A DNA stretch of 64,000 nt, from assembly GCF_000009045.1 (NCBI RefSeq), contig NC_000964.3, forward strand, positions 3,534,001 through 3,598,000, in the 5' to 3' direction. The DNA comes from Bacillus subtilis subsp. subtilis str. 168 (GTDB lineage Bacteria > Bacillota > Bacilli > Bacillales > Bacillaceae). The notes under the pieces were generated by a model. It had not been told where the DNA came from. It did no database searches and saw only the letters and a list, made by a program, of their open reading frames with translations. A program made the translations under genes and the position numbers. Of the stretch, positions 11,889-48,937 are shown piece by piece (position 1 is the first letter of the stretch; each line of letters begins with the position of its first letter).

Positions 11889-11964
11889 CGCGCTCGGAGG
11901 GATTCGAACCCCCGACAGACGTGGTACCGGAAACCACCGCTCTATCCAACTGAGCTACGAGCGC
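11889..11964 (-). tRNA. trnQ-Arg: tRNA-Arg (anticodon CCG)
   Basis: Cloverleaf: acceptor GCGCTCG/CGAGCGC, D-arm GCTC/GAGC, anticodon loop TTCCGGT, T-loop TTCGAAT; 76 nt to the discriminator; CCA not encoded in register. Confidence 0.96.
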
Positions 11965-45638: not shown

Positions 45639-45675
45639 AAAAATCTCCCACTCATTGTTTGAATAGGAGATTTTT
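45639..45675 (-). terminator. Terminator after yvzA
   Basis: AAAAATCTCCTA...TGGGAGATTTTT-ATTTT. Confidence 0.75.
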
Positions 45676-45678
45676 GTG

Positions 45679-46038
45679 TTAGACATCTTTCACTGGCTTC
45701 TTTTTTCTGTAAGTCAATGTTACATCCTGCTGTCGCAGGTCTTCTATTATCATTTTGTACCGATCAACTTTTGCGGTATGTTCTTCTTTTATCATCTGAA
45801 GGGCAGCTTTTCGTTTTTCGCTATTAGACTCAAGCTCTTTTTTTATTTTTTTTACAATCAACCCTTTTTGCCCTTTGATTTCCTCTTTTAATGAAGACTC
45901 AAATTTCTTTGTCAGGCTGAGAAAGTCGTTGATCGGTTGATTGAGGGTGCCCGCTTTCCCCTTCATTTCATCTTGGGTAAGAAACATATAGGTCGTTGAT
46001 ACAATTTCTGTTTCACTTTCTGAAAATAAGGAAGTCAC
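45679..46038 (-). CDS. yvzA: Small helical protein; candidate WXG100-like secretion partner
   Basis: 119 aa, Lys/Glu-rich heptads around a central GQKG; GTG start 10 nt after GGAGG. Confidence 0.75.
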   Translation of the reverse strand: MTSLFSESETEIVSTTYMFLTQDEMKGKAGTLNQPINDFLSLTKKFESSLKEEIKGQKGLIVKKIKKELESNSEKRKAALQMIKEEHTAKVDRYKMIIEDLRQQDVTLTYRKKKPVKDV

Positions 46039-46052
46039 TCTTCATATTCCTC

Positions 46053-47963
46053 CTAAGACTGAAAATCAAATAACTGAGAAATCATTTCTTCTTTTTCAAA
46101 CAGCTTTTCAATACTCTCGCGGATATTTTTGATAAAATCTCTTTTTTCTGTTGTCTGTTTTTTTAATTCAGCAACAATTCCATCATTTGCAGGAAGCGCA
46201 CCTGTGTGGAATGATTCATGAACTGAGATTTTCTCCAATTTATCGAATGTGTGGCTGAAACCAGCTGCAAGCCGGAATTGAAGATCGAAGGCATAATGCG
46301 AAGGGTTTTCTTCCATATGATGAATAGCCGTGATGATCGCCTGCTTTTTGTCTATGAAGTCTTCATCGATTTCCTGACTGTAAACCTTCTGGTACTTAGA
46401 AATCGCATCTTCCATATCTTCAACGATTTTCATACCGTTTTGATAGATTCTGACAGCGGATGAGAGATTGACTTGAATCGTTTCTCCCGAGCCACTCTTC
46501 CCTGTAAAATAAATATCGGAGCCTTTATAGCTGAAGCCTTTTTCCTTTGACAAGGCGTTGAGCATTTGAACGATGCTGTGGCCGTCGACGATAAGTTTTA
46601 GTGCGTCTTTTGTTTCTGTGTCGAGTGTTTTCAATGAGGACAGAATTGATTTTACATAGTCCACTATTTCACCAACGTCTTTTAAAGCTTGCATAAATTG
46701 GCCATGTTTTAGATGGTCTATGAAATGTTCGTACCGTGACTCTATGCCTCGCATACTCGCATTAATATTCGTTAATTCTTTTTTGATGACTTTCTTTTGC
46801 GTTTCATCAATATAACCATTTTCAGCTAACTGATCTACGACCGGTCCGCTGTTTCTCAACAAGGTATGAAGAAAACCTAAAAACGACGGCAGTTCCTCTT
46901 TTATTCGGCCATACATTTGCTTAACATCATCAAAATGCTCATATAGGACACTTACTTTCTTTAAAGCGCCGTCTGTGTTTTTCACTTTTTCAATCAGGTC
47001 TATGTCTATCCCGCTGGCTGCCTTTATAAAACCGTTCAAGCCGTCTTTTTCATAGTCATCCTTATATTTTTGAAGGAATTTTTGAATTGACCTCACATCT
47101 TCGTCAGGAACCCCATCCATAATGTTTCGGATGCCTTTTACACTTGTATTTGTATCTGCCATCTTCACATCACCGAATGTAATAAAATCGGCCTTGCCGC
47201 TGACTCCATACAGCGGGTCATCTTTTGAGATGCGCTGAGTGATGTTTGTTGTTACGCCTTTGTCTTCATAATATTTTTGGATTTCTTTTTTTAACTTTTC
47301 TGGCGGGATGGAATCTATATCTTCATATTTATAACTAAATTTCCTAATAACATATCTATATAAACTTTCATCAGTTTCAAGTAATTGATCAATATTGACT
47401 TGAGCTCCATTTACCCCATAAACTTCATCATATTCTCCATCAATCAATTGCACCATAACTTGGTTATTATTTGCAAGTGAATGTCCTAAGGCGAATGTTT
47501 TTAAATCCTCAGAGTTACCTGCTGCTTTCTTTGCTTTGTTAGTAAACTCCTTTGTAGCCTCATACTGACTATGATCAATTCCTAAAAAAAGACCAAAAAA
47601 GTTATATGACCAATCCTTATTATCGGCACTACCTTCTGAAATAATCTGAAGCTGATCAATATGTTTTTTCTCATCTATTATATGGATTGCCGTTCCATCG
47701 TAACCTGATTCTCTGGTCGAACTTTGTATACTTGTATTCTGATTTACAAGTTCATTGGAGGTGTAAATTTCAATTTTCATATTCTCAGGAAGATCGTGGT
47801 GGGTTTCCTCTTTATAAATTCTGCGTATATCTGCTTCGAAATCCTTCTTAGCTTTCTTAACTTCACTCGCAATAGTTGAGGCAAACTTTTGTTTATAGTC
47901 ATATTCTAAATCAATTAACCTTAACTTTACGTTCTCATTCTCAAATACATTTTTATTTCCCAT
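46053..47963 (-). CDS. yvcB: Alpha/beta-hydrolase (lipase-like) N-terminus plus helical C-terminus; candidate secreted toxin
   Basis: EGS..DW, GHSLA (Ser162), NGA and DDPL motifs; no signal peptide; 636 aa. Confidence 0.8.
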   Translation of the reverse strand: MGNKNVFENENVKLRLIDLEYDYKQKFASTIASEVKKAKKDFEADIRRIYKEETHHDLPENMKIEIYTSNELVNQNTSIQSSTRESGYDGTAIHIIDEKKHIDQLQIISEGSADNKDWSYNFFGLFLGIDHSQYEATKEFTNKAKKAAGNSEDLKTFALGHSLANNNQVMVQLIDGEYDEVYGVNGAQVNIDQLLETDESLYRYVIRKFSYKYEDIDSIPPEKLKKEIQKYYEDKGVTTNITQRISKDDPLYGVSGKADFITFGDVKMADTNTSVKGIRNIMDGVPDEDVRSIQKFLQKYKDDYEKDGLNGFIKAASGIDIDLIEKVKNTDGALKKVSVLYEHFDDVKQMYGRIKEELPSFLGFLHTLLRNSGPVVDQLAENGYIDETQKKVIKKELTNINASMRGIESRYEHFIDHLKHGQFMQALKDVGEIVDYVKSILSSLKTLDTETKDALKLIVDGHSIVQMLNALSKEKGFSYKGSDIYFTGKSGSGETIQVNLSSAVRIYQNGMKIVEDMEDAISKYQKVYSQEIDEDFIDKKQAIITAIHHMEENPSHYAFDLQFRLAAGFSHTFDKLEKISVHESFHTGALPANDGIVAELKKQTTEKRDFIKNIRESIEKLFEKEEMISQLFDFQS

Positions 47964-47964
47964 C

Positions 47965-48690
47965 TTATTTCTCCTTTTTATCTATTAAAAAGGTGATAGA
48001 ATTAATTAATTTCTCAACTTTATTTTTAGCCTTTTCTTCATCTAAGGAGCATGGTTGATTTTCATTTTTGCATCCAAGGGTAAAGGCGTATTCTACTCCT
48101 AGGTTATCTTCCTCTGTAGACTTAACATATCCAAAATAACTGTATGAATAATTATATTTTCTATCAATATCGTCAAAGATGTCTTTTTTCTTGGCAGTGT
48201 AAATATCCGTTTTCTTTTTGCTGCTTTTTTTGTATTCGCCTTTATAATCATTTTTTCCACTAACAATATCTAGCATTGTCTTAGGTTCATTCGCAAAACT
48301 TTCTTCTTTGTAATATGTTACATGGCCATCAAACATTACATTGGTGTCTTTATCATAACTATTAAATCCAATACTTTCTTTGTTTTTCCCGGTTAACGAT
48401 GATCTTCTTGATAGATACTTTCCATCCTCCGGAAACAACATCCTAAACCCTTTCAGCTTAGATTCCAGCAAATAATATCCTGGTTCCTCTTCTTTTGTTG
48501 ACACCATGTACTCTCTCGTTTTCTCGTCCTGAAACGCAGGTACTTGAGGCAGATCCTTGGGATCCATGTCTTTTGGTTTTACCGCTTCTGTTTTATTGTC
48601 ATTTGTGCTGTTTTTATCATTGTCATTCATACTGCATCCTCCTGTCAGGGCAAGTAATAAGCTGAAGCAAATAAAGATGATCTTTTTCAT
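47965..48690 (-). CDS. yvcA: Lipoprotein; candidate immunity protein
   Basis: MKK + hydrophobic core + LTGGC; stop lies 1 nt before the yvcB ATG; 241 aa. Confidence 0.85.
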   Translation of the reverse strand: MKKIIFICFSLLLALTGGCSMNDNDKNSTNDNKTEAVKPKDMDPKDLPQVPAFQDEKTREYMVSTKEEEPGYYLLESKLKGFRMLFPEDGKYLSRRSSLTGKNKESIGFNSYDKDTNVMFDGHVTYYKEESFANEPKTMLDIVSGKNDYKGEYKKSSKKKTDIYTAKKKDIFDDIDRKYNYSYSYFGYVKSTEEDNLGVEYAFTLGCKNENQPCSLDEEKAKNKVEKLINSITFLIDKKEK

Positions 48691-48905
48691 TACGAACCTC
48701 CACGGGTTTTGTGAGAATAGTATTCTATTTTTATATCAAAAATAATTCTATTGACCTGGTTAAGAGATGATTATTTCATCCTTTTTCATGTTACATCATG
48801 GCGGAATTTGGATAAATAGGAAATGAGACTCGGTTTTGATCTCCTTTTATTAACTAATCATATATAACACCCAATATAAATCTAAATACCTATTACTTTT
48901 TTCAC

Positions 48906-48937
48906 AAAACAAAAAGAGCCGTATCATCCGGCTCTTT
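48906..48937 (-). terminator. his operon terminator
   Basis: AAAGAGCCG-GATGATA-CGGCTCTTTTT-GTTTT. Confidence 0.82.

Follow-up and report, generated by a model that had tools for sequence, protein, structure and literature searches.

The yvcA-yvcB-yvzA locus of Bacillus subtilis subsp. subtilis str. 168 raises the question of why a hydrolase without an export signal should be encoded directly after a lipoprotein located outside the cytoplasm. The locus was analysed in a window of 64,000 bp of the chromosome (NC_000964.3, positions 3,534,001 to 3,598,000), to which all positions below refer. The three open reading frames (ORFs) follow one another head to tail along the minus strand with hisI on one side and an ATP-binding cassette (ABC) transporter gene on the other. 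[quoted passage not shown] A reading of this kind was given a probability of about two in three in the present analysis. It holds that yvcA-yvcB-yvzA is a polymorphic toxin-immunity module and that YvcB represents an independent family of reverse type VIIb (T7SSb) hydrolase toxins, with the enzyme at the N-terminus, a lipoprotein for immunity and a constant export partner.

The hydrolase YvcB

YvcB matched the Pfam family DUF6792 (PF20591, alpha/beta-hydrolase clan) with 215.9 bits (cut-off 25, E-value 5.8e-64), residues 38-252 covering the whole model. The motifs quoted in the preliminary description were all present, namely EGSADNKDW (109-118), GHSLA (Ser162), NGA (185-187), DDPL (248-251), DGHS (His462) and IQVNL (496-500). 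Ser162, Asp248/249 and Gly461-His462 were invariant in 12 relatives. Across 31 family members with only 25-47% identity the Ser and His were invariant and the Asp nearly so. The conservation of these residues shows that the motifs are not due to chance, and in such divergent members it indicates that catalysis is under selection. YvcB can be called a putative lipase on the basis of its clan membership and context.

DUF6792 has few members. When 1.84 billion representative proteins were searched with a profile, 200 representatives were obtained, nearly all of 530-720 aa and of one architecture. Every named match came from Bacillus-type genera. A 2024 survey of alpha/beta-hydrolases placed DUF6792 in that clan and left its function unassigned; it reported co-occurrence with PsbP-like genes and an insertion, a bundle of helices, that separates strand beta-8 from the catalytic His (PMC11878206). 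The AlphaFold2 model of YvcB was of moderate quality, with a mean predicted local distance difference test score (pLDDT) of 70.6, a predicted template modelling score (pTM) of 0.43 and core loops below pLDDT 50. The model comprised two N-terminal helices at 10-54, a mixed alpha/beta core at 60-263, long helices at 287-459 and the Gly461-His462 loop. These were followed by three short strands at 477-499 and long helices at 500-552, 554-566, 593-621 and 625-631. Helices 287-459 precede His462, in agreement with the layout described for the family. The earlier assignment of His462 to the enzyme, with the long helical part beginning near residue 500, is consistent with the model. Searches of the PDB with the YvcB sequence alone or with a 12-sequence YvcB profile gave nothing meaningful.

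The absence of a signal peptide from YvcB, claimed earlier, was upheld by a hydropathy scan in which no hydrophobic stretch was found. The maximum Kyte-Doolittle mean over 19 residues was 0.97 and that of the N-terminus was -0.43. YvcB also contains no transmembrane segment and no cysteine. One DUF6792 protein, P0147 of Neobacillus sp. WH10 (L035 10001-12034), is named 'flagellar protein FlgN' by NCBI. This looks like a misannotation due to the helical part.

The lipoprotein YvcA

YvcA begins with a signal peptide, MKKIIFICFSLLLALTGGC, in which residue 19 is the lipobox Cys. The protein matched the NCBIfam family 'lipoprotein YvcA' (NF058635, lipoprot_YvcA) with 464 bits (cut-off 285, E-value 7.8e-140), in line with the lipoprotein proposed in the preliminary description. 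Its Pfam family is PF27181, named YvcA_Mog1p. YvcA has been detected by mass spectrometry in the lipoprotein fraction of B. subtilis (PMC12055916). Cys207 and Cys214 of the mature protein were invariant in an alignment of 22 homologues, and an invariant pair of cysteines in the mature domain fits a location outside the cytoplasm. YvcB without an export signal and YvcA outside the cytoplasm form a mismatch of compartments which demands export.

The AlphaFold2 model of YvcA had a pLDDT of 84 and a pTM of 0.78. The top fold matches were Mog1p (1eq6) and the lipoprotein DcrB (6e8a), with probabilities of 0.98-0.99 and E-values of only 3e-3 to 8e-3. [quoted passage not shown] None of these fold matches was strong, with E-values of 3e-3 to 2e-2. 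A PDB sequence search with the 22-sequence YvcA profile gave nothing meaningful.

Variability of yvcA and yvcB

The window was compared at the DNA level with the corresponding loci of ten related species. Among close species hisI and the ABC transporter gene on the flanks were 90-99% identical. Identity fell from approximately 92% to 56-77% between approximately 48515, one third into yvcA, and approximately 47315, near codon 215 of yvcB. The hydrolase core was 61-76% identical in nucleotide sequence to species with 90-99% identical flanks. A second variable block, the inserted bundle at approximately 47165-46700, was 51-67% identical in B. spizizenii and B. stercoris (L005, L006) and approximately 90% identical in other species, and therefore recombines independently. 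The bundle was 39-44% identical at the protein level to that of B. spizizenii, B. stercoris and B. atrophaeus (L005-L007) and 81-96% identical to other alleles of the B. subtilis group. From approximately 46565, covering the 3' 500 nt or so of yvcB, to the end of yvzA identity returned to 93-98%. Among close species the C-terminal region of YvcB had 93-98% protein identity compared to 68-93% for the N-terminal part.

YvcB alleles within B. subtilis were 99, 90, 89, 85 and 71% identical. YvcA of the window was 93-95% identical to proteins of B. halotolerans, and alleles of yvcA and yvcB appear to be shared across species boundaries. The yvcA/yvcB allele of the window (46053-48690) shared 92-96% identity with its counterparts in B. 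halotolerans, B. mojavensis and B. rugosus. It is a minority type in B. subtilis, in which most YvcB proteins were 71% and most YvcA proteins 58-70% identical to it.

A genome scan covered 28 species loci (L001-L028), the B. subtilis species representative not being among them. One to four extra yvcA genes were found upstream at many loci. On a single contig, Bacillus sp. WMMC1349 had five distinct YvcA clusters and B. tequilensis had four. The extra hydrolase pieces were all N-terminal (residues 1 to at most 316) and located upstream of the full gene, each after an extra yvcA, with up to four such orphan cassettes per locus. Orphan cassettes of contact-dependent inhibition systems (CDI; cdiA-CT/cdiI) and of Rhs systems likewise hold displaced variable toxin fragments, each with an immunity gene, beside one full-length gene. 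Those fragments are C-terminal and downstream while the yvcB fragments are N-terminal and upstream, each following its immunity gene. This is the mirror image of the CDI and Rhs arrangement, as expected from a toxin with a variable N-terminus. The reading frame of yvcB was interrupted in 3 of the 28 genomes, with yvcA intact in each of these.

Geobacillus icigianus contained four complete yvcA-hydrolase pairs in tandem. Its hydrolases were 95-100% identical in their last 180 or so residues and 53-99% identical in their first 200. In the four complete Geobacillus paralogue comparisons the YvcB C-terminal region was 99-100% identical. The signal peptides of the G. icigianus YvcA proteins were 98-100% identical and the mature parts 26-94%, and the most similar pair of hydrolases matched the most similar pair of YvcA proteins. 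The variable domain of YvcA and the N-terminus of YvcB change together both between species and among the four paralogous pairs, and physical linkage has a share in this.

Three further observations concern these arrays. Two DDE transposase genes were present in G. icigianus a few kb upstream of the tandem pairs (L029 1407-3877). The YvcA ORF P0363 of Bacillus sp. WMMC1349 (alignment columns 240-268) extends into a short match to the hydrolase N-terminus, and this read-through ORF has the appearance of a scar left by recombination at an orphan cassette. The N-terminal helix of YvcB (residues 10-27, window 47883-47936) has an Arg15 and a Tyr21 that were invariant family-wide and a Glu20 that was nearly so, and it is kept in the orphan fragments. 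It could be part of an export signal or a recombination handle.

Several features of polymorphic toxin-immunity loci were present here, namely a constant C-terminal part of some 175-190 aa (93-100% identity) and a variable N-terminal core (53-93%) within conserved flanks, a co-varying adjacent immunity gene and orphan cassettes. One such feature, the same trafficking domain on unrelated toxin domains, was absent. The variable block, orphan arrays, co-varying pairs and interrupted yvcB give comparative support to the toxin and immunity roles proposed earlier, roles which remain putative on sequence grounds.

The same data bear on a housekeeping or developmental explanation, in which YvcB is an intracellular or spore-associated esterase and YvcA a structural biofilm lipoprotein, both acting on the cell's own envelope with no antagonism. 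Its attraction lies in the known phenotypes. Complex colony architecture requires yvcA according to work cited in PMC3033389 and PMC8003051. Clean deletion of yvcB gave malformed spores with growth unchanged (PMC7426031), and cassettes removing the 5' end of yvcA are tolerated in strain 168. As a test of the need for immunity, the hisI-yvcA integration constructs were set aside as uninformative, since they remove the yvcA promoter and 5' end. An identity of 51-77% inside flanks of 90-99% is not seen in housekeeping genes, and there would be no co-variation between an enzyme of the cytoplasm and a lipoprotein outside it. The yvcA gene is also missing from the plant-associated relative FZB42 (PMC4029887). 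Neither this absence nor the polymorphism, the orphan arrays with their fragments, the four divergent tandem pairs or the interruption of yvcB fits a housekeeping enzyme, and this explanation was considered improbable.

The constant C-terminus and YvzA

The constant region of YvcB ends in a tail closing with ..LFEKEEMISQLFDFQS. The preliminary description had read an FxxxE motif in this tail as resembling a type VII export signal. What is conserved there is the pattern L621-x3-E625-x2-I628-x3-F632, while the F622-x3-E626 originally singled out is not conserved in the B. licheniformis group. The pattern H-x3-[D/E]-x2-h-x3-H was defined at the C-terminus of WXG100 superfamily proteins and put forward as a surface recognised by the T7SS (PMC3935865). 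It was found within the last 30 residues of 58 of the 60 full-length family representatives. Shuffled tails contained it in 11.4 of 60 cases on average (maximum 20), and other 30-residue windows in 14%.

YvzA was 85-95% identical among close species and so about as constant as the YvcB C-terminus. A homologue was located 3' of the hydrolase gene in 20 of the 21 other loci (B. subtilis-type profile, E-values 1e-55 to 3e-3). YvzA had no Pfam or NCBIfam match. It contains no hydrophobic segment and no cysteine, is predicted to have terminal strands, and carries the GQKG and LRQQD motifs reported earlier. T7SSb substrates typically come with a small constant partner gene (PMC10730906, PMC13560087). 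The conservation and position of yvzA support its earlier designation as the probable partner of YvcB.

Linkage to type VII genes and regulation

No T7SS genes were found within 6 kb of the module at the 28 scanned loci, which include the B. subtilis and B. licheniformis groups. Linkage was then examined in eleven more distant family members. In 7 of the 11 genomes the triad was located directly upstream of the WXG100-YukD-YukC-EssC genes (esxA-yukD-yukC-essC) on the same strand, with one gene intervening in one case. These were Geobacillus icigianus, Parageobacillus toebii, Anoxybacteroides tepidamans, Neobacillus sp., Fictibacillus iocasae, Mesobacillus zeae and 'Bacillus massilinigeriensis'. 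The order was yvcA-like gene(s), DUF6792 gene, a gene of 109-112 aa, which is a genuine homologue of yvzA, and then the T7SS genes. In Aquibacillus the module was 5.4 kb upstream of the T7SS genes and in the remaining 3 of the 11 genomes it was elsewhere. The Geobacillus-type genomes have outer flanks unlike those of the other genera, and the linkage to the T7SS has therefore been kept while the surroundings changed. Together with the 58 of 60 tails, adjacency in 7 of 11 genomes lends comparative support to the earlier proposal that YvcB is a type VII substrate, and export by this route is probable to that extent.

Two neighbourhoods of the distant modules are recorded here. A DUF5068 (PF16781) gene of 412-423 aa was present 5' of the yvcA arrays in Mesobacillus zeae (L038 1188-2426) and 'B. 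massilinigeriensis' (L040 5100-6371), possibly as another conserved neighbour of the module in its T7SS-linked form. In B. weihaiensis (L032 857-2714) and Metabacillus litoralis (L037 12994-18621) the unlinked module was surrounded by a DUF2357/PDDEXK_7 gene and small ORFs of the Hol_Tox family (PF16935), an arrangement suggestive of a mixed conflict island.

Regulation was as stated in the preliminary description. A yvcA promoter-lacZ fusion was activated by intermediate levels of phosphorylated DegU (DegU~P) (PMC3033389), and the yukE operon and four LXG toxin operons are also activated by DegU~P (PMC8321402).

Location beside esxA suggests another explanation, that the hydrolase is an accessory enzyme of the T7SS. 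It would remodel envelope lipids or lipoproteins of the producer for assembly or opening of the apparatus, with YvcA as a membrane-side regulator. Such a role would suit the many genomes in which the module directly precedes esxA, and also the constant company of the three genes. An accessory enzyme is expected to be conserved, single-copy and present wherever there is a T7SS, whereas this module is hypervariable, multiplied and pseudogenised. It is also missing from relatives that have a T7SS: FZB42 has no yvcA, and B. velezensis is reported to employ the T7SS for its LXG toxins (PMC11942605). Of the explanations considered this was the least probable.

Points against type VII export of a toxin

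A number of results weigh against the reading of YvcB as an exported T7SSb toxin. The first is the lack of T7SS genes near the module in the 28 scanned loci. The tail pattern has helical periodicity and can arise by chance, as it does in the 14% of other windows. In hhalign comparisons with the EsxA proteins adjoining the distant modules the YvcB C-terminus gave a probability of 2.2%, which was not significant, although the best local alignment superposed the tails of the YvcB family and of EsxA. The YvzA family gave a probability of 0.2% against the neighbouring EsxA/WXG100 proteins, also not significant. No LXG, WXG100 or Lipase_3 domain was found in a Pfam scan of YvcB and 31 diverse members at E-values up to 1.

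The structural comparison suggested in the preliminary description as a check on the fold did not confirm it. A Foldseek search with the model of the whole YvcB protein returned nothing at an E-value below 0.001, only generic helical bundles. With no significant structural match and a mediocre model, too weak in the hydrolase core for assigning a fold, neither a lipase-like pocket nor an LXG-like fold was demonstrated. An LXG-like fold for the C-terminus is unproven in a model that has a pLDDT of 30-72 in that region. Among the 200 representatives the C-terminal region was in no case joined to an unrelated toxin domain. One candidate for such a fusion, P0195, was rejected, as profile comparison identified it as a truncated member starting at approximately family position 245.

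The co-variation of yvcA and the 5' part of yvcB is also expected from physical linkage alone. A pure interbacterial toxin predicts no effect of the kind seen in the spores of the yvcB deletion strain. This phenotype may reflect a second role or expression late in development. The searchable literature contained no experimental data on EssC/YukB-dependent secretion, toxicity or lipase activity of YvcB.

Some of these results fit the main rival explanation, which keeps the toxin and immunity roles and doubts only the route. In that case YvcB is not a T7SS substrate and leaves by lysis of the cell or mother cell, a holin-like route or vesicles, and the module belongs to a shared competition island. 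Polymorphism, orphan arrays and an extracytoplasmic immunity protein are all independent of the route. The missing homology to LXG and WXG100 proteins and the unlinked state of the module at every locus of the first scan would be natural, and the spore phenotype could be a sign of expression in sporulating cells, in which the mother cell undergoes lysis. Seven genera whose outer flanks differ have the triad in the same place and orientation directly upstream of esxA, which would not be expected of a module without a tie to the T7SS. The WXG100-consensus tail in 58 of 60 members and the small constant partner typical of T7SSb substrates (PMC10730906, PMC13560087) also point to the T7SS. Export by another route was therefore considered unlikely.

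Comparison with known systems

The closest parallel is TslA-TilA-TlaA1/TlaA2 (Tsl1) of Staphylococcus aureus (PMC10730906). In both modules the order is lipoprotein immunity gene(s), hydrolase and small partner gene(s), and the hydrolase has no signal peptide, an N-terminal enzyme and a C-terminal helical region. The number of upstream lipoprotein genes varies and T7SS genes adjoin in some genomes. The nucleophile Ser is at position 164 in TslA and 162 in YvcB. The differences are considerable. The triad of TslA is contiguous (Ser164, Asp224, His251) while the Asp and His462 of YvcB are separated by approximately 175 residues of the bundle. Immunity in Tsl1 is provided by DUF576 lipoproteins and there are two Tla partners, compared to the Mog1p-like YvcA of PF27181 and one partner with predicted terminal strands. 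No G-x-L/LXG-like turn could be shown. YvcB had no detected sequence relationship to TslA, no staphylococcal protein being among the named matches of its family, and no DUF576 lipoprotein structure was among the listed fold matches of YvcA. The likeness of YvcB to TslA, on which the preliminary description drew, is analogy and not homology. The gene order and reverse layout are shared, while the hydrolase family, immunity fold and partner differ.

The second such system, TslM-TilM-TlaM (Tsl2; PMC13560087, Aug 2026), also has the reverse layout, a single small partner, several divergent immunity genes nearby and reported homologues in Bacillus. Its authors called it only the second reverse T7SSb lipase family. 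Tsl2 has a DUF1433 membrane immunity protein and a WXG100 partner, and its Bacillus homologues are approximately 400 aa. The yvc module has a lipoprotein of another fold for immunity, a partner that is not a WXG100 protein and a hydrolase of 600-700 aa with an inserted bundle. It is no homologue of Tsl2, and neither DUF576 nor DUF1433 similarity was found in it.

Outside type VII secretion, the T6SS pair Tle4/TplE-Tli4/TplEi of Pseudomonas aeruginosa resembles the proposed pair in that a dedicated immunity protein neutralises an effector of lipase type at a site outside the cytoplasm. It differs from YvcB in secretion system, phylum and effector family. The LXG operons of B. subtilis (YxiD, YeeF and others; PMC8321402), like yvcA-yvcB-yvzA, have no linkage to the yukE operon, are controlled by DegS-DegU and vary within the species. 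LXG toxins have a constant N-terminal trafficking domain, diverse C-terminal toxins and cytoplasmic antitoxins. YvcB is their mirror image, always with the same type of enzyme and with an extracytoplasmic partner. No paper in the searchable literature linked DUF6792, YvcB or YvzA to type VII secretion, and no prior claim of a third reverse family was found.

Proposed mechanism

The export route, substrate, toxicity and inhibition by YvcA can be inferred from the anatomy, residue conservation, mosaic pattern, orphan arrays and T7SS linkage observed in this analysis. The constant C-terminus, consisting of a short beta-meander, a long helical hairpin and a tail of WXG100 type, would form together with YvzA a targeting signal for type VIIb secretion, which in B. 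subtilis would be through the apparatus of the yukE operon. Exported YvcB would attack an ester-linked envelope lipid of neighbouring cells. YvcA on the outer face of the producer membrane would bind and block the variable hydrolase core of its cognate YvcB. New specificities would arise by recombination with the upstream orphan cassettes, each holding a yvcA copy and a 5' fragment of yvcB. In biofilms the module would be expressed under DegU~P together with the T7SS and LXG toxins.

The active site would be split between the exchangeable and constant parts. The N-terminal cassette would supply the Ser, the Asp and immunity specificity, and the constant C-terminal half the His and the export signal. 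With the His and export signal together in the constant half, the stored upstream cassettes could be swapped without touching export. That the module represents a third, evolutionarily independent reverse T7SSb lipase family, widespread in Bacillus-type genera, often located directly upstream of esxA and with such a split active site, and that the yvcA colony phenotype is a loss of immunity, was given an even chance.

Anatomy and boundaries of the locus

The arrangement of three minus-strand genes was as originally claimed. The junction of yvcA and yvcB reads AAA AAG GAG AAA TAA g ATG, with a gap of 1 nt between stop and ATG, and the Shine-Dalgarno sequence of yvcB (AAGGAG) is inside the final codons of yvcA. 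Terminator-like hairpins just after hisI and just after yvzA mark the three genes as a discrete unit, and yvcA-yvcB-yvzA is a self-contained three-gene operon between terminators. A sigma-70-like pair of hexamers, a consensus match only, was present at 48886..48857 in the yvcA leader. The positions of all features are listed in Table 1.

Table 1. Features of the yvcA-yvcB-yvzA locus, numbered from the first nucleotide of the window.
Feature	Position	Strand	Remarks
Intrinsic terminator 3' of hisI	48913..48937	(-)	Upstream module boundary; 9 pairs, 5 G-C, then T run
yvcA promoter/leader, 222 nt	48691..48912	(-)	Reported DegU~P-activated; 85-93% identity among close species
yvcA	48690..47965	(-)	ORF, 241 aa; proposed extracytoplasmic immunity lipoprotein
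YvcA signal peptide and lipobox, residues 1-19, LALTGGC	48634..48690	(-)	Hydropathy maximum of the protein; Gly18 and Cys19 invariant in 22 homologues
YvcA mature Mog1p/PsbP-like domain, residues ~40-238	47977..48573	(-)	~40-90 conserved, ~90-238 hypervariable; model pLDDT >93
yvcB	47963..46053	(-)	ORF, 636 aa; DUF6792 alpha/beta-hydrolase; proposed exported lipase-type toxin
Hydrolase core, residues 38-252, variable block 1	47208..47852	(-)	GHSLA elbow, Ser162 codon 47478-47480; DDPL, Asp248/249 at 47217-47222
Inserted helical bundle, residues ~285-459, variable block 2	46587..47111	(-)	AlphaFold2 helices 287-459, pLDDT 72-93
YvcB constant C-terminal region, residues 447-636, proposed trafficking region	46056..46625	(-)	His462 loop (codon 46578-46580), strands 477-499, helices 500-631
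Tail pattern L621-x3-E625-x2-I628-x3-F632 (H-x3-[D/E]-x2-h-x3-H)	46068..46103	(-)	WXG100-type consensus
yvzA	46038..45679	(-)	ORF, 119 aa, GTG start 10 nt past AGGAGG; small constant partner
Intrinsic terminator 3' of yvzA	45639..45675	(-)	Downstream module boundary; 16-pair stem, then T run

A search with the PADLOC anti-phage defence models gave one chance-level match only (E-value 0.0087). The sole Rfam match in the whole 64-kb window was one tRNA gene on the minus strand (11889-11964).

Significance

The T7SS of B. subtilis exports YukE and six LXG toxins according to the literature consulted. If the reading of yvcA-yvcB-yvzA as a T7SSb toxin module is true, YvcB would be a seventh, non-LXG and lipid-acting substrate, widening the picture of T7SSb in its best genetic model. 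It would belong to only the third family of reverse substrates and the first with hydrolase, immunity and partner families of its own, and it would help to define what the T7SS machine recognises at the C-terminus. The mirrored orphan arrays are a clean natural example of specificity exchange when the variable end is N-terminal. The yvcA biofilm phenotype of 2007, so far without a mechanism, would gain a concrete one, and three families of 'unknown function', DUF6792, PF27181 and YvzA, would gain a function.

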